Assembly: GCA_038496445.1 (NCBI GenBank)
Contig: JALMLS010000440.1
Span: 186,001 to 250,000, forward strand
Reading direction: 5' to 3'
From: Trichosphaerium sp. ATCC 40318
Lineage: Eukaryota > Protista > Tubulinea
Length of the DNA: 64,000 nucleotides
The translations under genes and the position numbers were made by a program. How positions within the stretch are numbered: position 1 is the first letter of the stretch; the number at the start of each line of letters is the position of its first letter. The notes beneath the pieces were generated by a model, which saw only the letters and a program-made list of their open reading frames with translations, was not told the origin of the DNA and did not search any database. Below, in pieces: positions 13,412-62,300 of this stretch.

Positions 13412-14559
13412 TCAATCCGCCCAAACTTCAATAATACATTGACTAAGATATTCAGCAATACCCTGCTTTGTAACTGAAGTTCCATGAATATCAATGAACT
13501 TAACACCAGAAAGAGCTTTGATTCCTTCATCTGTAATGCTCTTACATCCCAATAGAGAAATGTCATAGACACCAGTAAGCGCTTTGATGCCTTCATCTGT
13601 CACTGAAGTATAGCGTAGATTTATGGTATGAACACCAGCAAGAGCTACTATACCTTCATCTGTAACTGAAGTGTTGTTCAAGGTAATAGTGTGTACACCT
13701 TCCAACGCTTTGATACCTTCATCTGTAATACCTTTACACTCCGTAAGATTAATCTCATGAACACCAGCAAGAGCTTTCAACCCTTCATCTGTAATGCTCT
13801 CACAATTGCTAAGATCAATGGTATGTACACCAGAGAGACACTTCAAGCCTTCATCTGTTATTGAAGTTCCTTCAAGGTCAATAGTGTGTACACCAGAAAG
13901 AGGCTTCAAGCCTTCATCTGTTACTGAAGTTTGGGAAAGATGAATTTCATGAACACCTTTCAGTGCTTTGATACCTTCATCTGTAATACCTTCACATTCA
14001 TTAAGACAAATGGTGTGTACACCTGCAAGCGATCTAACTCCTTCATCTGTAATACGGCTACGCCAACGTAAGTTGATTGTATGAACACCAGCTAGAGCAT
14101 GTAACCCTTCATCTGTTATCCTTGCGCACTGAGAAAGGTCTACTTCATGACAACTAGAGAGCGATTTCAATCCTTCGACTGATGCGTTGATGCAGCTCAG
14201 TGCAATGGAGCGAACGCCTGAAAACTCTTTAATGAACGCTTCAGATAGAGATTTGCTCGATATCTTGACTTTTGTGTGTTGTAGAGTACTGCGATGTTTT
14301 AAAACTGCTCTTGCTTGCTCGATACTCGATATCGTGACTTCGTGGTATCCTATAACATCATGAATGATAGAAGCAAGGCAATGACATGTCTGACAAGCCG
14401 CGAATCGCGCTGTTGTCGTTCTTCGTAAAATATCCGCTAAAGTCTCTCTAGGAAGGTCTAAAATGCTTTGTGGAGCTCTATTATAGGTGTTACATTAAAT
14501 ATTGTGTAGAAATATCGCAAGTACGTTTGCTTTAAGCTAGTTAGCCTGTTTTTTGACAT
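13412..14559 (-). CDS. F-box-like + leucine-rich repeat protein
   Basis: Short first exon, then SILDLPRETLADIL...ACQTCHCL (F-box-like) and about 11 tandem 22-23-aa repeats ITDEGxKALxGVHTIxL. Confidence 0.8.
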
Positions 14560-22752: not shown

Positions 22753-23899
22753 TCAGTACTTGTAATACATTAAATAATAGAACGCAAGAAACAAAAATAT
22801 GACAAAAGGAACAATAGATTGCCATATGTCTGGTGGTCCATGGCGACTATGAACAGTTAAACGGCCGCTCGTATCCCACTCCTTATGCTCTCCATATTTC
22901 CGACGACATCTTTTATGGTACATGGTCTTCATGTTACCATTCTTGTACCACTTTTTGTACTGACCATGTTGTTCGCCATTGAGATAGTTTGCTTGGATTT
23001 TTATTTGTCCATTTTCATACCACTCTTTGAACTCTCCTTCTCGTTTGTGATTAATGTATTGTGCTTTGTATATTATTTGTCCATTTTGAAGCCACTTCTT
23101 ACACTCTCCATCACTAATTCCATTGACGAAATGACAGTGTTCCCTTAACTGTCCGTTTTCATGCCATGTCTTGTATTCTCCATTTCGTCTACCATTCTTG
23201 TAGTGACTACATTCTATAATATTACCGTTTTCATACCACATCTTACATTCTCCGTTACGTCTACCACCCAAATAGCTAGATGCTTCCTTTAATTGGCCGT
23301 TCTTGTACCATCTCTTATAATCTCCTTCATACTCATTATGGTGGTAGTTACAGTGTAACTCCAGTTGGCCATCATCATACCAGGTCTTGAGTTCTCCCTC
23401 TAGTTTATCATTTATGTAATGGTACTGATGCCGCAAGCGCGTATTTTTATGCCAAGCCTTGTATTTTCCTTCTTTTTTACCATTTTTGTAACAAAGTACA
23501 ATTAATTGGCCATTTTTTGTCAGCCAACTTTTGAGCTCTCCGTCAAGTTTTCCGTTCACATAGTACTGCTCAATGTACAGTTTTCCATTTTTGTACCACC
23601 TCTTATACTCTCTATGTCGTTGGGTATGTCTCCAATCATCTTCAGCCTAAAGACATGTAAATGTCAAGTTTTCATTTATTGTTTTTACCATAAAATCAAA
23701 AGTCTGAGGATCATATTTGAATTTTCCATTTCCCATGTTTCTTTAACTCATCATCAAATCTTGTAGTCGTTGCTGTGTATTTTGATAAAACAGGCCATAT
23801 TAGATAAATTTCTGTATCCAAATCAATAATATCGAGCTGTAACTCAAATGGAAGGTTTAAGAGATGGCAAATAGGCGTAGGTGGCGAAGCAGTCATCAT
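22753..23899 (-). CDS. F-box-like + MORN-variant (YwqK-like) repeat protein with C-terminal TM; apparent +1 frameshift near 23722
   Basis: About 11 repeats of GEYKxWYENGQLxxxxxYxNG; C-terminal IVPFVIFLFLAFYYL. The N-terminal ORF stops at KWKIQI* while the shifted frame continues FKYDPQTFDFM|intron|AEDDWRH. Confidence 0.72.
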
Positions 23900-24586: not shown

Positions 24587-25585
24587 ATGGCCACGTGTTG
24601 TGGTGTTTGCGCCACTTTGATAGTAGCTTTGATGAGTGTATTCGTATATTTTCTAGTAACGACAGCACCTACAGAGGCATACAAACCTGTAGACACGGAA
24701 GACATTATTGCTGAGCATGGAAAGTTCCTTAGACTGTCAAACGGTCGTATCCTTGAATATTTTGAATCAGGTGACATAACATCAGGTGATACTATACTAT
24801 TCCTTCATGGATATGGCCAGACAGGTCGATTCTTTAAGTTTTATTCGAAAATTTTTAGGAAACTAAAAGTACGCGTTTTATCCCCTAGTTACCCTGGTAC
24901 TGGGCGATCAGAGTTCTTTCCTTATGAGTTTAAAGACTTTCATAAATATGCAGAAGAATTATTGAATCACGTGGGAACTTATAAAATTTATGCTGTGGGT
25001 GTCTCAAATGGAGGTCCTCATATTGCTGCTGTAGCTGCAGGTCTTGGAGATCGAATTAAAGACATTGCGATGATCGTACCTCTTTCAGAAAAAGTACCAG
25101 GGAATGATCCGTTTAAAGAATGTCCCTTGATGTTTAGAACAGCGATGACGCTACTACAGCTTCCTTATATTGGCAGTTTTATTAATAATTATGTTGTTAG
25201 ACCTTCTCTTAGATATGATCCTATCGGTCATTTCGAGAAACTGATTCCAGAAGAATGGGCCATTTTAAGAAACGAGGCAAGTAAAGAAGAGATGGAGAAC
25301 CTGGCGAATGACCAAGCGCGTGGTGTTGTAGAAGGTGTTGATAGCTTGACTCATGTTATGTATCTTAATAGTAGACCTTGGGGTATTGATTATGGTAAAG
25401 TGGGGGAGAACAGAAGAGTATTTATTTACTCTTGTTCACGTGACACAGTTTGCCCTAGTTCTGGTCAGGAGTACTTGGCAAGCCGTATACCTAATAGTCA
25501 ACTCATTAAATACGGCTGTTCTCATATGACATCGTTCTCACATTTAACAGAAATTATACAGAAATTAATGCGCCATGACGAATAA
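24587..25585 (+). CDS. Intronless alpha/beta hydrolase with N-terminal membrane anchor
   Basis: ILFLHGYG oxyanion motif, GVSNGG nucleophile elbow, acid in RDTVCP, His in SHM; N-terminal hydrophobic segment. Confidence 0.9.
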   Translation: MATCCGVCATLIVALMSVFVYFLVTTAPTEAYKPVDTEDIIAEHGKFLRLSNGRILEYFESGDITSGDTILFLHGYGQTGRFFKFYSKIFRKLKVRVLSPSYPGTGRSEFFPYEFKDFHKYAEELLNHVGTYKIYAVGVSNGGPHIAAVAAGLGDRIKDIAMIVPLSEKVPGNDPFKECPLMFRTAMTLLQLPYIGSFINNYVVRPSLRYDPIGHFEKLIPEEWAILRNEASKEEMENLANDQARGVVEGVDSLTHVMYLNSRPWGIDYGKVGENRRVFIYSCSRDTVCPSSGQEYLASRIPNSQLIKYGCSHMTSFSHLTEIIQKLMRHDE

Positions 25586-30160: not shown

Positions 30161-30976
30161 CTAGGGTATGCAGTCTGTTCGAATGTTATTTACATAATTC
30201 CACTGTTCATTCACTTGACCGTCTTCATGCCATGATTTAAACTCTCCCTCTCGTTTACCATTGACATAGTTAAACAGTTCTTCTAATTGTCCATTATCAT
30301 GCCAAAGCTTGCTCTCTCCTTCTGTTTTACCTTGAACATAGTAACACTGTTCATTCAATTGACCATTTTCATACCAACATCTGTACTCACCATGTTGTTT
30401 GTTATTGACATAATAAAACATCTCTTCAAGTTGACCATTCTCATACCACAGCTTATACTCTCCTTCACATCTACCATTAACAAAATGACTTTGTTCAAGT
30501 AATTTACCACTCTCAAACCAACACTTATGTTCTCCTTCTTTCTTATCATTAACATAATAAAACTTTGCTTTCAATTCTCCATTACTATACCACTGCTTAA
30601 ACTCACCATCTCGTTTATCATTGACAAAATACCACTGCTCTTCCAGCATACCATCCTTAGAATAAAATCTCTTGTATCCTTCTTGGATACCATGTTTCCA
30701 CTGTTGAGTTACAACTCTTTTTGATCTTTTACTCCGTTTCTTCCACTTGCCATGTTTTTTCATCTCTTCATCAAACCGTGTTGTTGTTGCTGTGTATTTT
30801 GATAGTATCGGCCATTTTAAGTACGATTCTGAGTCTATATCGATGATATAATGATGTAGCTCTACTGGAAGATCTAATATTCTCGTATTGTGTTCGTTGT
30901 TATGTGCGTACTCCTTGTGTATGGTTTTGTAAGTGAGAAGTAAGCTACAATTACGTACCTTTAGTTTTTTAGCCAT
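30161..30976 (-). CDS. F-box-like + MORN-variant repeat protein
   Basis: RILDLPVELHHYII, then WPILSKYTATTTRFD shared with the 23.8-kb paralog, then about 7 MORN-variant repeats. Probable in-frame 45-nt first intron. Confidence 0.85.
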   Translation of the reverse strand: MAKKLKVRNCSLLLTYKTIHKEYAHNNEHNTRILDLPVELHHYIIDIDSESYLKWPILSKYTATTTRFDEEMKKHGKWKKRSKRSKRVVTQQWKHGIQEGYKRFYSKDGMLEEQWYFVNDKRDGEFKQWYSNGELKAKFYYVNDKKEGEHKCWFESGKLLEQSHFVNGRCEGEYKLWYENGQLEEMFYYVNNKQHGEYRCWYENGQLNEQCYYVQGKTEGESKLWHDNGQLEELFNYVNGKREGEFKSWHEDGQVNEQWNYVNNIRTDCIP

Positions 30977-48667: not shown

Positions 48668-51600
48668 ATGCGGGTTTCGTTTTGCTTGGCCTCGCTTTAT
48701 TTGGTTGCTCTTATTGCGACCGTATACGGCGCTTCAAGACCTACAGAGTCTGTACCGAACTGCGATGCTGCTTCTCCTGAATGGGGATGTCCTCCTGATG
48801 ATTACAGAGTGTTCCGAAATGGTAGAATTGATAGACTTACCTGTAACACAAGACCAGAACCTCGTATGTCATGGGCAACAAAGGTTGTTCGCAGCAATGC
48901 ATACAGCACTTGGGCTGGTGCAGAAGACGCTAAAGAGACCGAATACGTCCCAGAAAAAGTGATGGATATTAGCATTCGCGTCAACAACTATGCCTTCAAA
49001 TACCGCGGTATTCTTATCTATGCTCAAGATGCCGATGGTAACAGAGTTGGCGAATGGCTTCTACCAGATGAACAGAACCGTACGTTAAAAAAAAACAACT
49101 TCGAAAAGTCGGCGTTTTATTTTTTCCGGTTGATACGCAAAATCACGTGATAAAACGTGTTGTTTAAAAAAATCACGTGATTTTCGTTCGTTTTAACTTT
49201 TTGACTACTTTTCTGACTTGCCTTCCTCAGTTGGTTCTTTTGCTTTTTTTTGTCGTTCACGTGCTTACTTCTTTTTGTAGCATTCTTTCAATTGCCTTGG
49301 CCTAATACACACGAGTGTCGCCAGAGTATTACACACCAGAGTGCTGAACTCAAGCCTCTCAAGTCAACATGGAAATGGAAGGCTCCTCCAAAGGGAACAG
49401 GTCCAGTAACGTTTCACTGCTTGATTAAGCAAGGTGACGCTAATACCGGCGCCTTTTATTGGCCAAACAACGCCGGAACCGGTCCACTTCAACTCACAGA
49501 ATCAAGTGCACGTAAACCACGTCAAACATGGTTTCAATCCAACGTAAGCGTTTTTCCTTGTACAATTTTTTCTATTGTTCCCTGGTCTAATGTTTCTTCT
49601 TAGAGAGGTCAATCTTGTACTGATAGATGTGCCGAAGAGAATCTCCTATGTGATGTTGTCCATATGGAGCGTGTAAACAGCCCAACAAGAATTGAACAGC
49701 TCATTATTCCACAAAGTTTCCCTTGCAAACTTCCTTATGTCAGTGGTTGTAGCAACAAAGGAGCTACAATGGGTACTGATGGTCTTTGCTACTTTGACGA
49801 CACAAGATGTGCAGACCAAGGGCGTAATACAGGACGAGTTACTTGTGACTCCAGAAGTGGTGATACAAGAATCGGGTATGCTAAAGTCAAAGTCTTTTTG
49901 GTTTTTTTTCTTACTTCCGTTTTCTTTGAACTTACTTTTTATTTAGCCTTCGTATGTGCAAATGTCTTGCAAGTACTCTTCCTCCTGCCAATCCAGGTAA
50001 TACTGTTATTGCCGCAAGAGGTGCAACTTCACCTGCCACAAAATCGACAACATCTTTCTTGTTCATGGCTCTCGCTGTCCTCGGTTTGACAATGCGTTCT
50101 TCTGGAAAGATGACAACTTCAGTCGTCTTGGCTCTCTTCCTCATCGCTTTGGTTTCCTTCCCTTCAGTTAACGCTCACAACTGGGCTACAAGTTTTGCTA
50201 GAAGCACAAACATTGCTAGTACCACAACACCTTGCCCACCAAGAAGACACGCTTCCCCTCATGTTCAACTTGGCGCCGGTCAACAATTTGAAATCGAATG
50301 GGCTGTCGGTCATACTCAGCCTTCGTACTACGTCATAGTGAAGGCAGAAGATGAAGCAAGGCTCAAAGAGGTTTCATTCGCTGCTATGAACGCTTACATG
50401 GACAATGCACCTGCCGGCGCATGCCAGAACTTGCCTGTATACCACAGACAGTTCAGAGCTCGAACTGGCTATGACGCTTTCTTACAATACTACAGTGGAC
50501 CTATCGCTGCGACTTCTCCAAACTTCATTCCAAGGCCAGAAGCTTTCGGTGGTTGGGCAGATGATGCTACTTTGTTCGGATACAAGGACGAACTTGAAGT
50601 AAGAAACTACTGCGAGTATGCAAGCAATGAATTAGATTTCGTTCTTGGTATCTTCAAGTTCGAGCACTACGCACACAGGCCTCAAGACGCTGATATGGTA
50701 AGGCTCACAATGCCAGCTGGTGCTGCTTTTGGTGATTACGTTGTACAATGGCTATGGAGAGGATACAGAGATTGTGTTGATGTTAATTATGTCAACAAGC
50801 AGGTAGAACATATCTACGGTCTTGCAGATCCTGTTGGTGGATTCACGTACGTTTTTCTCATTTCTACCTTTGCTCCTTTTTCTTTTTCATAATAAAGGCG
50901 TTTTTCTTACTTCTCTCTTAGCCGTATTGATCACTGCTACTTACCAGCTCGCCGTGATGTTTATGGTACGTAAAAAATCTTGAAACTTGAAAATCACGTG
51001 TTAGCATTTTGCATGAAAACGTGCTCTTTTATTGTTTTGTTTGTTTCTTCTTCTCACTTCTATTATAGATTGTCATAGAATCTATACAGACACAGATGTT
51101 TGCGCCAGGGCTTGTTCAATCAGACGAGGATGCAACGCCTATATTGTAATGCCTAGACAACAACTCGCAAACCAATACAACGCCCAAGCTGATCTTCTTC
51201 CTCAACTTTGCAAAGATAACGTTGTAGATCTCGGAGAAGATCCCTCAAACGTTGATGTTTGCTTTGGAGTACGCGGACGTATTCCATCCGAGACTTTTGG
51301 ATTAGAAGAAGTCGTACATGCTGGAGATCCTGCTTACCACTCAACATGTTACATCAAAGGATCTGGTCGTCTCTTTGCAGACTACATAGTACCTCCTCAA
51401 CATCAAGATATCCCTTGGAGACACGGCGACGAATGTATCTCTTGCGATGCTGTCAATCTAAACAAGAACATAACACGTGTACCTAAATGGCCAATGACAA
51501 ACGACTGCAGGAACTGCGACTTGGAACCTAAAACGGACACACCTCCTTTCAACCCACCTAAACTTATCCTCAGAGAAGCCGACCACTACTGCGATGGACA

Positions 51601-51937
51601 TGGTGTTTACGTAAACCTTGGAGGGGGTAGGAGACATCATGATTGTCCTGGAGACACATGGAGGCAATGTAAGAAAGAAGTGTTGATTAGAGGACGTGCT
51701 GCACCTTGGCACAACCGTCATTTTGCTGGTGATTGCGCTGCAGCTGCATCTAGGGATCCAGAGTGTTCAGATGAAATCTACACTCAGAACCTTGCCTCTG
51801 TGCAATACCAAGGTAAAAATGCTGTAAGATGCTACTGTATGACAAAGATGGCTTGCTGTAACGGATGTCGCCCAAGAGCTCCTGGAGTTAGAGCCTTCCT
51901 TTGGAACGTATACACTCTAGACCGTGGAACATCTTAA
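48668..51937 (+). CDS. 919-aa precursor: signal peptide, Reeler, Cys-rich module, hydrophobic hairpin with internal signal peptide, His-brace LPMO-like domain, PAN-like/Cys-rich tail
   Basis: Exons 48668-49079, 49281-49543, 49604-49875, 49947-50846, 50922-50965, 51069-51937 sum to 2760 nt and splice in frame with GT-AG. Reeler motifs YRGILIYA..VGEW, ITH, WKAP..GTGPVTF. LPMO-like VNA|HNW, EWAVGH, YVVQWLWRGYRDCVDV. Confidence 0.85.
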
Positions 51938-52399: not shown

Positions 52400-53375
52400 C
52401 AAAAATATGCGTGGTAAACTTGTGCTATTTATTGCCTTGAAAAAGACTTTACTATTGCCTGCCTGTACATTTCATCAACACCTGTACCATCTTTTGCTGA
52501 TGTTTCAAAATAATCTAATCCTCTTTCATCACAAAACAATTGTGCTTCCTCCCGTGATACTTGACGATTTTCCTCGTCAATCTTATTACCAACTATTACT
52601 TTCAAGCAATCCTAAGTATTCATTAGAACTTCCAAAACTGACTTAAAAATAAATTGCCAACAATCCAAAAAAATTCTTGTTGTCACGTGTCTATAGGTAT
52701 AGTCACCAACCACAAGTGTAGTAGTAGGTACATAGAATAGATTCACGTATATTTGAGAGAACCAAATACACCACAGTAGCAAACAAGACCTTTTTTTGGA
52801 AAGATTAAACAACTTTTAAAAAAAAATCATATCAGCATTATTTTACCTCACTACTCCGTTCTTTTGCAATCCTAAGCCATTCTTCTACTTCCATCCATGA
52901 ATCTCTATCACAGACACTAAATACAATAGCAATACAAGATGCTCCACGAATATAAGACGGAGTTATCGACCGAAATCTTTCTTGACCAGCAGTATCCCAT
53001 AGGTTCGCTCTAAAAACCTTACCATTAGCCTCCAGCCTCTTATATCCCTTGAAAGAGCGTTAAACAAACGTTCCTGATAAACAACGTACAAAGTCTACGC
53101 CAATAGTGCTTATTTCCCTCTCAGAAAACGTGTTTTTCGTGTACCGTTGTTGTAAGCATGTCTGAGGCGGCGTAAGAGAGAAATATTGAACAGTTTTGCA
53201 CTTTGCCGACGCCGCTGTTGCCCAATACAACCATCTTAACTAAAAACTCGTCTATACTATCATAGTGCCCGTTAAAAGCCTATAAAGTCTGTTTTAAGAA
53301 TGTACATAAGACACAGCAAGAAATTACCTTCTCTTGATTAAAAAATGGTATGCTAGTTGTACAACTGTTGCCCAT
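52400..53375 (-). CDS. Rab-family small GTPase with N-terminal MGNSCT acylation motif; 3' end uncertain
   Basis: MGNSCTTSIPFFNQEK|AFNG...KMVVLGNSGVGK|TCL...STIGVDF|...LWDTAGQERFRSIT..YIRGA...VGNKID...ETSAK. Confidence 0.85.
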
Positions 53376-59318: not shown

Positions 59319-62300
59319 TTACAAGTTTGCCACCTCTGTAATGTAGAAATCACCATCTACTTCCCTCCCTTTTTCGTATGATGAGGATGAAGATGAGAAA
59401 TCGAGCCCATCTTCGCTATCCCAAGTACCCAGCAATTTTTGTATTGTTTGCACAATCTTCGCAAAAGTAGGTCTTTTTTTGTATTCACTTTGAAGGCAAT
59501 TCGTCAATAACTCTTTTCCTCCGTCGATACCTACATTCTCTGGTATTGGTATACATTCGCCGCTTCTGATACGATCTAGAATATCAGTTGGAGATACTCC
59601 TTGCCAAGGTACTTGTAGTGTCTCAATTTCCCATAGAAGTAGTCCAAAAGAATAAACATCCGATTGCATATGAAATTGCTTCGATGAGATAACTTCAGGT
59701 GCCATGTACGCTGTATGAAAGAAAAATTAATTATTAACACAAATAATGTATATTGAGATATTAAGTACGTACAAACAGCGCCAGGTATACCTATAATGTA
59801 CTTTTGGTCCTTTCCTGTGAAAAAAACAAAAGTGAGAAAAAAATACGAAAGAATAATAAAAGGTAGTACCAAGCAATTTGCTGAAACCGAAGTCTGCAAC
59901 TTTAGCCAAACCCTTCTCAGTCAACTAGACATTGACACAAACATTAGAAACATCAACATACAGTATAACATACCAAAACATTTCCTCCATTTAAGTCACA
60001 GTGAAGAACGTTCGACAAGTGTAAATAATTCAAACCTAATAAGAAGTTGACACTACTAACAACAAAATAGTTTGTACCAAGCGCTATATCTAATGCTATT
60101 TCAAGCTTCCTATCATTTGATAGACTCCTTCCATTGACTTGAAGGTAATGACGCAAAGATCCTCCACTACAATACTAACAAGGATGAGAACAAAAACAAT
60201 AACAGTTAAAGAAATTTTTACCTCCATCAGAATGTACTTTACGTTTGAGTCCAATGATGCTCCAAGGAACAATACAATATTCGGGTGTCGTAACGTCCAA
60301 TGTACACCAAGCTCATCAGCAAGTAGTTCAAGCTTTGTTTGTGATTTCTTGGCACGTTCTATAGTCTTGCATGCAACAGTGAGTCCACGGAAAGTTGCTT
60401 TATATACAACACCAAAATATCCTGTGATAGAATGTACTGAGCAAACCATAGGTTCTTTTTGCAGATGTTTAATAAAGAACGTACCTGCGCCTAATTCATC
60501 ACGAAGTGTTACCTCATGACTTGGTATTTGCCATGACTTATGCAATGTTTTTGCCAAATCAGCTCCTTTTTCTTGAACTGTATCAACAAAAAATTGTAGT
60601 AAAGAATTATCGCTCAGGCTGTCCAAAAACGATAATGCCAAGCGAAAGTCTACAAGATTATCATGTAAGTATAGGGCTATGTATATTATAGTTCGAGAGT
60701 ATTAACTACGAAAAACAAAGTGAGTACCAATTTCATCCTGTACAACTATTCTATCTTTTCCGGCTGTGTATGAAATCTTCATGTCTGATATGTCATGGTT
60801 CTCAAGTATCATTTCTTGGAACTGATCAAGAGTATGTTGTTTAGATATAGCAGCAATAGATGCTTTCCCGTTAATTACACATTTAATAAATAAGACGTCT
60901 AATAGACATAAGAACATTGAACTTTAATAAGAAAAAAATAAGAAAAAATTAACCTTTGTTTTCCAGCTGGGAGTAAGTGCGTGTGGGTTCTCTTTGGCTA
61001 TGACAAGAGTGAGATAGTTTTTATACATTTATATTACGTACACTGGGCGTGCTTTATAGTTCTCAAGGATTCGTACGATTTCGCCAAATTTAGGTCTATT
61101 TTCTGGCTTTTTCTTCCAACAATCCTTCATAATATTTACAAAAATCTCCTTTGTGTGCAGGTGTATTGAAGGTCGTAATCGCCCAGAGCATATCAGCGCC
61201 TAAAATATGGATATTTAAAAATAAAGATAAAACACAAGGAGGAGGAAAAATAGAAAACAAAGTGAAGTTGTATTTTTTTTTTGTACAATGTTGTCACTTC
61301 TTTCGCCGGAAACATAAGGACCTTTGACAACACTAAAAATACTTGTAAGATATTAAACAAGTTACGTGTGTATAAAGTACGCCTGTTGTGTTGCTGTTAA
61401 TTGCCACAAAAACATTCCATACATGTAGGAATTTGCACTATTAGTTCATTAAATGTACATTAAACAACTGAAGCGTACCTGAAAGATGTTCCTGCAAAAT
61501 CGTTTTGTAGTATTTCAGGGGCAAGAAACTCATAGTTACTTTGTATAAGAGACTGTAAATCTTTACTGAAAGGAACATGGAATAGTGGTATCGCTTCATG
61601 AATGCCCTGAAATGAAGGTTAATAATACACAGCAAAAAAAAAATATACATACACATAATTTAACAATTGGGTTAGCACTGTTTATCTGCTTTATCTATAT
61701 ATGTATAAGTTGCTTGTAATATTTATAAGACTTGAGCGTACGCCTATATACTTGGCATTAAACTTTGGGAACAGTAGATCAGGGTTTTGGGCTTCGAGGT
61801 ACTCAAAGGCTTTGGCAATATCAAGCGCTATTTTTAACTTTTTTTTCTGCGAGAGAGGTTTTCTATCTGACGCCTGGGCACGTTTGGTTCAGTAAAAAAA
61901 ATTGTGTTAACGTTTATTACACGTGTGGCTTACCACCAATACTTCATGAAGTCGCTTTGGGAATTTTTCATAAGCAAAGCCTCGTTGGGAGTCAAAACAA
62001 GTTCCAATGAAAGTTTGCAAAGTTGGTGATGAAAGAGTACTGGCAAGAACTGTTAGAATTCAGTTGTTCTAGATAAAATACGTACCTGAGTATTATATTA
62101 GAGACTATGTACGGGATATAATTATCGTCTTTGAGAAATACAAGCTCTTGGTGAGATGCTGGTTTAATCATTGTTCGACGTAGTAATCTAAGAAAAAAAT
62201 GAGAAACTTTTTTTTCTGAAGTGTACCCAAAGTCAGGCGCCAAGTGTGTTAGTCTTTGAAGCGTTTTAGAATCTTCATCACCATCTTTTAGTTATGTAAG

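Follow-up and report, generated by a model that had tools for sequence, protein, structure and literature searches.

A predicted secretory precursor from Trichosphaerium sp. that carries an internal signal peptide in front of a candidate histidine-brace domain

Gene model and features of the locus

The window, i.e. the whole 64 kb stretch of Trichosphaerium sp. DNA that was analysed, contains a six-exon gene with the following features (positions are those of the window).

48668..51937, forward strand: whole gene, six exons, 919 codons plus TAA stop (splice enumeration, translation, gapless homologue alignment)
48668-49079, 49281-49543, 49604-49875, 49947-50846, 50922-50965, 51069-51937, forward strand: exons 1 to 6
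48668..48730, forward strand: putative signal peptide at the N-terminus of the precursor, aa 1-21, MRVSFCLASLYLVALIATVYG (hydropathy peak in the windows of aa 1-9; cleavage site placed by reading the sequence)
48731..49543, forward strand: Reeler-like module, aa ~22-225, split by intron 1 (49080-49280) (phmmer homologues)
49604..49965, forward strand: Cys-rich module, aa 226-322, GQSCT...CKC, spanning intron 3 (49876-49946) (homologues)
49966..50052, forward strand: stalk of low complexity with many small residues, aa 323-351; candidate GPI omega region
50053..50091, forward strand: hydrophobic segment 1, aa 352-364, SFLFMALAVLGLT; stop-transfer or GPI-signal-like tail (hydropathy)
50092..50109, forward strand: basic loop MRSSGK, aa 365-370, with a predicted cytosolic location
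50110..50175, forward strand: internal signal-peptide-like segment (segment 2), aa 371-392, MTTSVVLALFLIALVSFPSVNA, ending in V-N-A
50176..50846, forward strand: HNW domain, aa 393-615 (369 relatives, conservation, AlphaFold2, Foldseek)
50176, 50311 and 50764, forward strand: candidate metal site His393, His438 and Tyr589 (family conservation)
50233 and 50773, forward strand: co-varying Cys412 and Cys592 (family conservation)
50922..51934, forward strand: C-terminal Cys-rich region, aa 616-919, starting with RIDHC and spanning intron 5

An exhaustive scan of GT/AG combinations yields six open solutions, one of which is the 919-amino-acid model. The junctions of this solution are gap-free against 14 homologues of full length whose transcript contigs lack introns; for example, GGFT/RIDHC runs across the exon 4/5 junction and a CxC motif across the exon 3/4 junction. 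All exon junctions of the model are thus confirmed through homology to these transcript-derived relatives. The single 919-residue frame from six exons that had been proposed from the letters of the window (the sequence-only reading) is borne out, and on re-translation its peptides and coordinates for the hairpin, His393, His438 in EWAVGH and Tyr589 are all correct. No paralogue of the gene was found within the window.

The front half and the C-terminal region

The Reeler-like part of the protein has 77 homologues in phmmer with E-values down to 1e-48, and for the whole front half these go down to 3e-70. Pfam Reeler does not match the separate exon translations of the window, as the domain is split by an intron. 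Homologues P0003, P0005, P0006 and P0013 match PF02014 with 30-39 bits (gathering cut-off 21), and the window protein aligns to the Reeler-positive homologues over this region with E-values from 2e-29 to 8e-35. The Reeler label, already given in the sequence-only reading, rests by transitivity on homologues above the PF02014 threshold, and not on the exon pieces of the window themselves. The front module is common to 74 of the 85 relatives in which the two halves are fused.

The Cys-rich module that follows has 46 homologues (E down to 3e-20) and conserved GQSC and CxC motifs; its exon pieces match no Pfam family. Beyond it, the 15 residues upstream of segment 1 consist for 61% of G/A/S/N/D/C/T across the family, versus a background of 46%.

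Downstream of the HNW domain, the C-terminal Cys-rich region has 41 homologues (E down to 4e-34) with a conserved RIDHC motif, and gives only a trace of PAN_4 in Pfam (E 0.99). No transmembrane-like 19-mer was found in this part of the window protein. A topology check of homologues with a late transmembrane segment places a cytosolic-type WW domain beyond that segment.

The HNW domain

The HNW domain has 369 relatives at E <= 1e-3. In domain numbering, His1, Cys20, His46, Tyr197 and Cys200 correspond to His393, Cys412, His438, Tyr589 and Cys592. His46 (125/125; His438 of the EWAVGH motif, 50311-50313) and Arg9 are invariant in an alignment of 125 members, and position 197 (Tyr589 in QWLWRGYRDCVDV, 50764-50766) is Tyr in 121 and Phe in four. 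Residues H1, N2, W3, W194, G196, Y197, D199 and D202 are each conserved in at least 90%. The two histidines and the tyrosine that the sequence-only reading had singled out are therefore conserved throughout the family. Positions 20 and 200 are both Cys in 99 members, neither is in 23 and only one is in three, a co-variation that connects the N-terminal arm with the strand of the Tyr. The YxxC spacing is the same in AA9 enzymes. Four aspartates are also conserved in the family (D143, D173, D199 and D202); the window protein departs from the consensus at two near-invariant positions, with Arg for D143 and Asp for P154.

The AlphaFold2 model of the window domain is a beta-sandwich (pLDDT 94.5, pTM 0.91), and the models are confident both for this domain and for a second family member, P0030. 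When the window model is compared with the PDB using Foldseek, 19 of the best 50 matches are LPMOs of families AA9, AA10 and AA11, with probabilities up to 0.99. These matches are weak (E >= 2e-3, TM 0.2-0.37; the best, 5ftz, has E 2e-3, probability 0.99 and TM 0.30/0.37), and N-domains of GH123 rank above them. For P0030 nothing is found at E <= 1e-3, p53/Grainyhead-type sandwiches are on top and only four of the best 50 matches are LPMOs, with E-values of at least 3.5e-2. LPMO structures are present among the matches, with E-values no better than 2e-3 and TM scores around 0.3, and more weakly for the second member. Despite their enrichment among the matches to the window model, the structural likeness to LPMOs is at most marginal and a shared fold is not established. 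Against viral structures, the model gives nothing significant.

At the sequence level, the window domain matches no Pfam family at E <= 1 and no entry in a PDB sequence search, and a profile of 125 HNW sequences gives no PDB match at E <= 10. None of the 125 members reaches a Pfam LPMO family; AA9 is the only Pfam family matched by more than one of them, weakly in four (best E 0.0057), and is matched by none of ten members that were scanned individually. Membership of AA9, AA10 or another LPMO family was therefore rejected on the lack of a family-model match, and the earlier suggestion of an LPMO-type domain in this region is not established. Judged by these searches, the HNW domain is a large uncharacterised domain family without a Pfam model.

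Copper or LPMO-type chemistry is plausible for such a domain. The alternative that survives best accepts that the precursor is cleaved and takes the HNW product to be non-oxidative, either a metal-binding or metal-scavenging protein like X325/Bim1 or a beta-sandwich for lectin-type binding or adhesion, with the N-terminal His serving only metal capture or structure. This would agree with the lack of an LPMO family by sequence and with fold matches that point to LPMOs no more than to generic Ig-like sandwiches, and the four conserved aspartates could add ligands in the manner of the X325 Asp. According to a review, the presence of a His brace does not predict oxidation of polysaccharides (PMC13353379). 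On the other hand, the use of either Tyr or Phe at position 197 and a disulfide pattern of the YxxC type are reminiscent of catalytic LPMOs, and the large Cys-rich C-terminal regions, which in P0003 include a Mucin2_WxxW domain, look like substrate-binding appendages. We regard a non-oxidative product as a serious but rather unlikely alternative.

The hairpin-His junction

His393 (CAC, 50176-50178) immediately follows the V-N-A that ends segment 2. Among the 150 listed matches, 134 align from domain residue 1, which together with the window gives 135 junctions. Residue +1 is His in 134 of these, the sole exception being Asp. At the internal junctions residue -1 is Ala in 78, Gly in 10 and Ser in four (A/G/S in 92/92) and residue -3 is A/V/S/T/C/G in 92/92, so that the -3/-1 rule of signal peptidase is obeyed throughout. 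A hairpin of two hydrophobic segments with a positive loop is present in 86 of the 92. In these 86 relatives the two segments are separated by a short charged stretch with a mean net charge of +1.8. As the same junction recurs across the family, its occurrence is far beyond chance. The hairpin-His junction, which had been pointed out in the window together with the suggestion to look for it in homologues, and whose conservation had been named as a test of the reading, is indeed conserved.

About 30 paralogues carry the HNW domain directly behind an ordinary N-terminal signal peptide. The internal segments have a median h-core of 12 residues and a median c-region of five, and the h-core of these paralogues has 11; by this measure the internal h-region is indistinguishable from their N-terminal signal peptides. 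With 13 residues in the window, segment 1 is rather too short for a genuine transmembrane helix; its core has a median of 13 residues in the family (IQR 11-15). This is within the 10-20 residues of the hydrophobic tail of a GPI signal, although such signals lie at the C-terminus and this one would be internal. The window shows the complete architecture of a signal-peptidase polyprotein: an N-terminal signal peptide, then a putative stop-transfer segment, a positively charged loop and, after it, an internal signal with a -3/-1 site.

Both hydrophobic segments could in principle remain embedded in the membrane, giving an uncleaved two-pass protein with two ectodomains in which His393 is an ordinary membrane-proximal residue. 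The adherence to the -3/-1 rule and the near-universal His at +1 argue against this, as do the paralogues whose mature protein would likewise begin with HNW, behind a normal signal peptide, and h-cores of 12-13 residues are of signal-peptide rather than transmembrane length. We consider an uncleaved hairpin improbable.

The fusion of the two halves does not depend on any splice call, since the last part of the Cys-rich module, the Ser/Thr stalk, segment 1, MRSSGK, the segment ending in VNA and His393 are all found in exon 4, where the entire junction lies in one uninterrupted reading frame (49954-50892). Relatives are single-ORF transcript contigs of about three times the protein length (in L001 the ORF covers 46-2976 of 2994 nt), in agreement with the original proposal that both halves lie on one mRNA. 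Least probable of all, to the point that we set it aside, is that two messages, internal initiation at ATG 50092 (MRSSGK) or 50110 (MTTSVV), tandem-gene read-through or a misjoined model account for the locus: the window does have these two in-frame Met codons just ahead of the h-region, and with intron 3 retained the upstream frame would end at TGA 50087-50089, 2 nt ahead of ATG 50092, but there is no stop codon between the halves, the location of everything within exon 4 leaves no room for a terminator or promoter, the conserved CxC motif that closes the upstream module is read from this exon too, without a change of frame, and the transcript-derived relatives hold both halves in one ORF. 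Just 24 of the 86 relatives have a Met in the loop or early h-region. Re-initiation is therefore not the route that the family conserves, and the internal start at MTTSVV, named at the outset as a possible objection, is not conserved as a start codon. The two-gene reading and an assembly or annotation artefact were both rejected, as the junction lies within one exon and single-ORF transcripts are conserved among the relatives.

The fused form is found in Amoebozoa, in Rhizaria and in a transcriptome of the ciliate Euplotes, and dozens of distantly related protist homologues have the same internal-junction design. A contig scan found no relatives in viral contigs. Word-based searches returned a single fragment (P0001) for a 250-aa piece, matches dominated by low-complexity words for P0009 and, for a region of P0003, eight proteins that do not include the window's own protein. 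A published description of the Reeler/internal-signal-peptide/HNW architecture was not found in the literature.

Proposed processing

The pattern of segments and cleavage motifs makes it well supported that the protein is a secretory polyprotein that would be split by host signal peptidase in the ER. In the proposed pathway, the N-terminal signal peptide would direct the Reeler-like module and the Cys-rich module to the lumen, segment 1 would halt transfer with the basic loop remaining cytosolic, segment 2 would re-enter the membrane as an internal signal peptide and signal peptidase would cleave after V-N-A. Two products would result in a fixed 1:1 ratio. The first would be a membrane-held Reeler/Cys-rich protein, anchored either by the leftover hairpin or, as segment 1 and the stalk resemble a GPI attachment signal, by GPI after transamidase cleavage. 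The second would be a soluble protein with His393 as its first residue. Its free N-terminal His would most likely form, with His438 and Tyr589, a metal site of the histidine-brace type on the beta-sandwich, a candidate copper site like that of LPMOs and related copper proteins. Such a precursor, split by signal peptidase to release a soluble protein that starts at His393 and has a putative His-brace copper site, is in our judgement the probable explanation of the locus.

A bolder version is possible, which we put forward tentatively. Transamidase acting at the stalk and signal peptidase acting at AxA/H would together remove the hairpin, releasing a GPI-anchored Reeler-type protein and an equimolar member of a new family of His-brace copper oxidases in phagotrophic protists of several supergroups. 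If so, a catalytic N-terminal His would be made from the middle of a polypeptide. Roles against prey cell walls or in the cyst wall are speculation.

Comparison with known systems

To our knowledge, every LPMO or LPMO-like domain described so far adjoins the first signal peptide, because a His-brace protein needs a free N-terminal His. As in LPMOs (AA9, AA10, AA11 etc.), the HNW domain would acquire a mature N-terminal His through signal-peptidase cleavage, and it shares with them a second conserved His, a Tyr/Phe near the C-terminal strands, a beta-sandwich core and a YxxC motif whose Cys is paired to one of the N-terminal region, here suggested by co-variation. It differs in starting with HNW, in having an invariant Arg9 and a second His as early as position 46, and in a location that is usually internal.

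The fungal copper proteins of the X325/Bim1 type likewise combine a candidate His brace with a link to the cell surface, GPI-type signals and a possible non-catalytic role for copper. In X325, however, the His-brace domain itself bears the C-terminal GPI signal, whereas in the HNW precursors it is the Reeler module further upstream that has the GPI-like signal; the HNW product of the window is without a membrane segment and no sequence similarity to X325 was detected. Reeler proteins (PF02014: the N-terminus of reelin, FRRS1/SDR2, insect Noduler) share the front module, which in relatives scores above the Pfam threshold. We know of none that is joined to an internal signal peptide or to a domain resembling a His-brace protein.

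The closest parallels in topology are viral. In C-prM-E of Flaviviridae, core-E1-E2 of HCV and Gn-Gc of bunyaviruses, one translation product similarly becomes two lumenal proteins by means of a stop-transfer segment, a loop of few residues in the cytosol and an internal signal with a -3/-1 site. The HNW precursors, in contrast, form a cellular protist family without detected viral relatives, and they seem to need the cut for generating a functional N-terminal residue, not just for separation. [quoted passage not shown] That construct is artificial, whereas the HNW precursors, with their putative GPI attachment, would be its natural counterpart.

Implications

Genome mining for new LPMO families relies on a domain directly behind the first signal peptide. 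Through an internal signal peptide in a larger precursor, the HNW family would have a conserved way around this N-terminal rule, and as its domain is placed internally, searches limited to N-terminal domains would miss it. The precursors would also be a rare cellular counterpart to the viral signal-peptidase polyproteins and possibly a natural case of an internal GPI signal. With members across Amoebozoa and Rhizaria, the family is open to direct testing for copper chemistry.

Gene model and neighbouring sequence

The window DNA is eukaryotic, with a G+C content of about 37% and short GT..AG introns. All GT/AG choices around the previously proposed junctions were enumerated, which gave six open solutions. 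One of these is the 919-amino-acid model, whose exons are listed together with the features of exon 4.

Exons of the 919-amino-acid model (GT/AG enumeration) and features of exon 4
48668–49079, +, exon 1
49281–49543, +, exon 2
49604–49875, +, exon 3
49947–50846, +, exon 4
50922–50965, +, exon 5
51069–51937, +, exon 6
Exon 4, first part: CxC end of the upstream Cys-rich module (same ORF)
Exon 4, second part: stalk rich in small residues, between the CxC end and segment 1
50053–50091, +, exon 4: hydrophobic segment 1, SFLFMALAVLGLT, amino acids 352–364
50092–50109, +, exon 4: loop MRSSGK
50110–50175, +, exon 4: hydrophobic segment 2, terminating in V-N-A
50176, +, exon 4: His393, followed by the entire HNW domain

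The sequence-only reading of six exons in one 919-amino-acid frame is borne out by comparison with 14 full-length relatives from intronless transcript contigs. The alignment is gapless at every exon junction and conserved motifs lie at several of them (GQSC at exon 2/3, CxC at exon 3/4 and T-RIDHC across exon 4/5). Exon 4 is a single unbroken ORF (49954–50892) and, since it alone encodes everything from the CxC end through the HNW domain, the fusion of the front half to this domain is independent of any splice prediction.

Retention of intron 3 (49876–49946, 71 nt) would carry the upstream frame (ORF 49664–50089) into a Phe/Leu-rich peptide up to a TGA stop at 50087–50089, 2 nt before the ATG at 50092 that opens MRSSGK and the signal peptide. 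This proximity probably arises by chance from the T-rich sequence of the intron; retention, if real, would yield a two-ORF isoform with stop/start coupling.

Neighbouring genes
13412–14170, −, LRR_6 protein
24587–25585, +, alpha/beta hydrolase
52429–52605, −, Ras-family GTPase exon, convergent with the 3′ end of the gene under study
60096–60641, −, protein kinase fragment

No functional link between these four neighbours and the gene under study is evident. Two ORFs with MORN_2 repeats, 22753–23559 (−) and 30161–30976 (−), lie about 7 kb apart (Pfam E = 7e-32 and 9e-29) and are likely to be paralogous genes. The 64 kb window contains no tRNA genes.

Conservation of the junction

Using the 223-residue domain beginning at His393 as a query against 1.84 billion representative proteins, we recovered 369 relatives with E ≤ 1e-3, of which 172 have E ≤ 1e-10. 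The alignment begins at query residue 1 in 134 of the 150 matches listed, and these together with the window form a set of 135 junctions. The +1 residue, which precedes N-W, is His in 134 and Asp in one. The domain is internal in 92 of the 135, starting anywhere from position 88 to 921. At these internal junctions the −1 residue is Ala (78), Gly (10) or Ser (4), and only Ala, Val, Ser, Thr, Cys or Gly occurs at −3. Two uncharged hydrophobic segments are found within 70 residues upstream in 86 of the 92, separated by a short charged stretch (mean net charge +1.8 in these 86 relatives); the median hydrophobic cores are 13 and 12 residues long, with a c-region of five. In about 30 paralogues the mature protein starts directly with HNW after a genuine N-terminal signal peptide (h-core 11), from which segment 2 is indistinguishable. 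The hairpin–His junction seen in the window is thus conserved in homologues.

The pre-hairpin linker is highly variable in length: at the position of the 29-residue stalk of the window, the relative P0025 carries an insertion of about 170 residues, repetitive and rich in Cys (about amino acids 310–480, between the CxC motif and the hairpin).

The HNW domain

Conservation was counted on an alignment of 125 sequences. Arg9 and His46 are invariant, while His1, Asn2, Trp3, Pro19, Gly45, Tyr74, Asp143, Tyr148, Pro154, Asp173, Gly186, Trp194, Gly196, Tyr197, Asp199, Asp202 and Gly215 are at least 90% conserved; position 197 is Tyr in 121 and Phe in four. The two histidines and the tyrosine singled out from the window are therefore family-wide features. 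Cys20 and Cys200 are present together in 99 sequences, absent together in 23 and found singly in three; this covariation argues for a disulfide linking the N-terminal arm to the Tyr197 strand. The same YxxC spacing is present in AA9.

In the window protein only Asp143 (Arg) and Pro154 (Asp) depart from this conserved set. These positions (amino acids 535 and 546, within 50602–50637) are Asp in 114 and Pro in 115 of the 125 sequences, and the family motif KYPW is missing as well, with the core His, His and Tyr retained. The window copy may be a divergent paralogue, or the alignment may be shifted locally.

AlphaFold2 with the 125-sequence alignment confidently predicts a β-sandwich with two helices for the window domain (pLDDT 94.5, pTM 0.91), and the same fold for the relative P0030 (pLDDT 94.0). 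Pfam matches no family to the window domain, and PDB searches by sequence and by family profile gave no match. AA9, the sole Pfam family matched by more than one of the 125 members, is matched weakly by only four. By these sequence searches, the domain belongs to no known family. In Foldseek, AA10, AA11 or AA9 LPMOs make up 19 of the 50 best PDB matches to the window model (best 5ftz, E = 2e-3, probability 0.99), a large over-representation given how small this structural class is; TM-scores are 0.2–0.37 and GH123 N-terminal domains outscore the LPMOs. The P0030 model has no PDB match reaching E = 1e-3, and p53/Grainyhead-type sandwiches head its list, with LPMOs at only four of the best 50. 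The predicted folds are weakly compatible with the proposed LPMO-like identity.

For an invariant His precisely at the signal-peptidase +1 position there is a single well known rationale, the histidine brace, and a putative metal site is therefore our best inference for the HNW domain. Oxidative LPMO activity would be only one of the possibilities; the domain may instead have a non-catalytic role.

Conserved architecture and proposed processing

Among 151 retrieved proteins (the 150 matches and the fragment P0001), 78 also match the window front half (amino acids 1–348; E down to 3e-70) and 41 match its C-terminal Cys-rich region. Of the 85 fused members included in the alignment, 74 have a window-like front module. 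The Reeler label given to this module rests on homology: Pfam Reeler is above threshold in four relatives, in the region aligning to about amino acids 60–200 of the window. The separate exon pieces of the window fall short of the model's length and have no match. All 15 aligned front modules share a Cys and an [LIM]-H-x-[ST]-A motif (C-x3-I-T-H-Q-S-A in the window, about amino acids 150–158, within 48731–49543), which may provide a metal or cofactor ligand.

Fused forms occur in Rhizaria (Lapot gusevi and a cercozoan, MMETSP0087), where Phyllostaurus siculus has the unfused form; further sources are the amoebozoans Flabellula baltica and Rhizamoeba saxonica and a Euplotes focardii transcriptome. 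In a domain tree built with FastTree, unfused forms group together (15 state changes; shuffle mean 25) and are not a single clade.

Most relatives come from transcriptome or metatranscriptome contigs whose length is about three times that of the protein, for example the 2994 nt contig L001 with a single ORF at 46–2976. One mRNA with one ORF spanning both halves, as proposed for the window, is thereby independently supported. Internal initiation or two separate genes is contradicted by these family-wide data; only 24 of 86 relatives have a Met in the stretch from segment 1 to the h-region, so an internal start is not a conserved route. A precursor remaining uncleaved as a two-pass membrane protein is likewise contradicted across the family.

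In its sequence features the precursor is shown to resemble a signal-peptidase polyprotein. The Reeler/Cys-rich part would be translocated into the lumen first, segment 1 would then stop transfer with the basic loop remaining cytosolic, and segment 2 would re-insert, allowing signal peptidase to cleave after VNA. The stalk and short segment 1 resemble a GPI attachment signal, and an internal GPI signal can be processed [Caras (1991), PMC2288913]; the front product may, speculatively, be GPI-anchored, with the hairpin cut out at both ends. The window HNW product has no membrane segment and should be secreted, or retained via its Cys-rich C-terminal region.

A late transmembrane segment is seen in 17 of 120 relatives. 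In the long relatives P0018 (amino acids 1506–1534) and P0022 (1581–1608) it lies near the end and precedes a WW domain (Pfam E = 9e-11 and 3e-9). As this WW domain is of cytosolic type, the order is consistent with the chain crossing the membrane an even number of times ahead of the HNW domain, and the HNW product of such relatives would be a type I membrane protein bearing a signalling tail in the cytosol. P0003 has a Mucin2_WxxW domain downstream of the HNW domain (amino acids 675–755, Pfam E = 5e-6). The C-terminal appendages vary from one relative to another and may act as binding modules.

Significance

Full-text literature searches found no account of a His-brace or LPMO-like domain freed from within a precursor, no link between LPMOs and Reeler domains and no amoebal or rhizarian LPMO-like families. 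The clusters of 30 relatives that were looked up carry no functional annotation, their source names being only 'hypothetical protein' or transcript identifiers, and word-based homologue searches gave no informative names. The kinds involved, His-brace-type proteins and signal-peptidase polyproteins, are known, and the HNW-precursor architecture is a variant. Each step of the proposal is directly testable. The architecture is both conserved and unexpected, and its internal HNW domain breaks the rule of an N-terminal domain by which such proteins are found.
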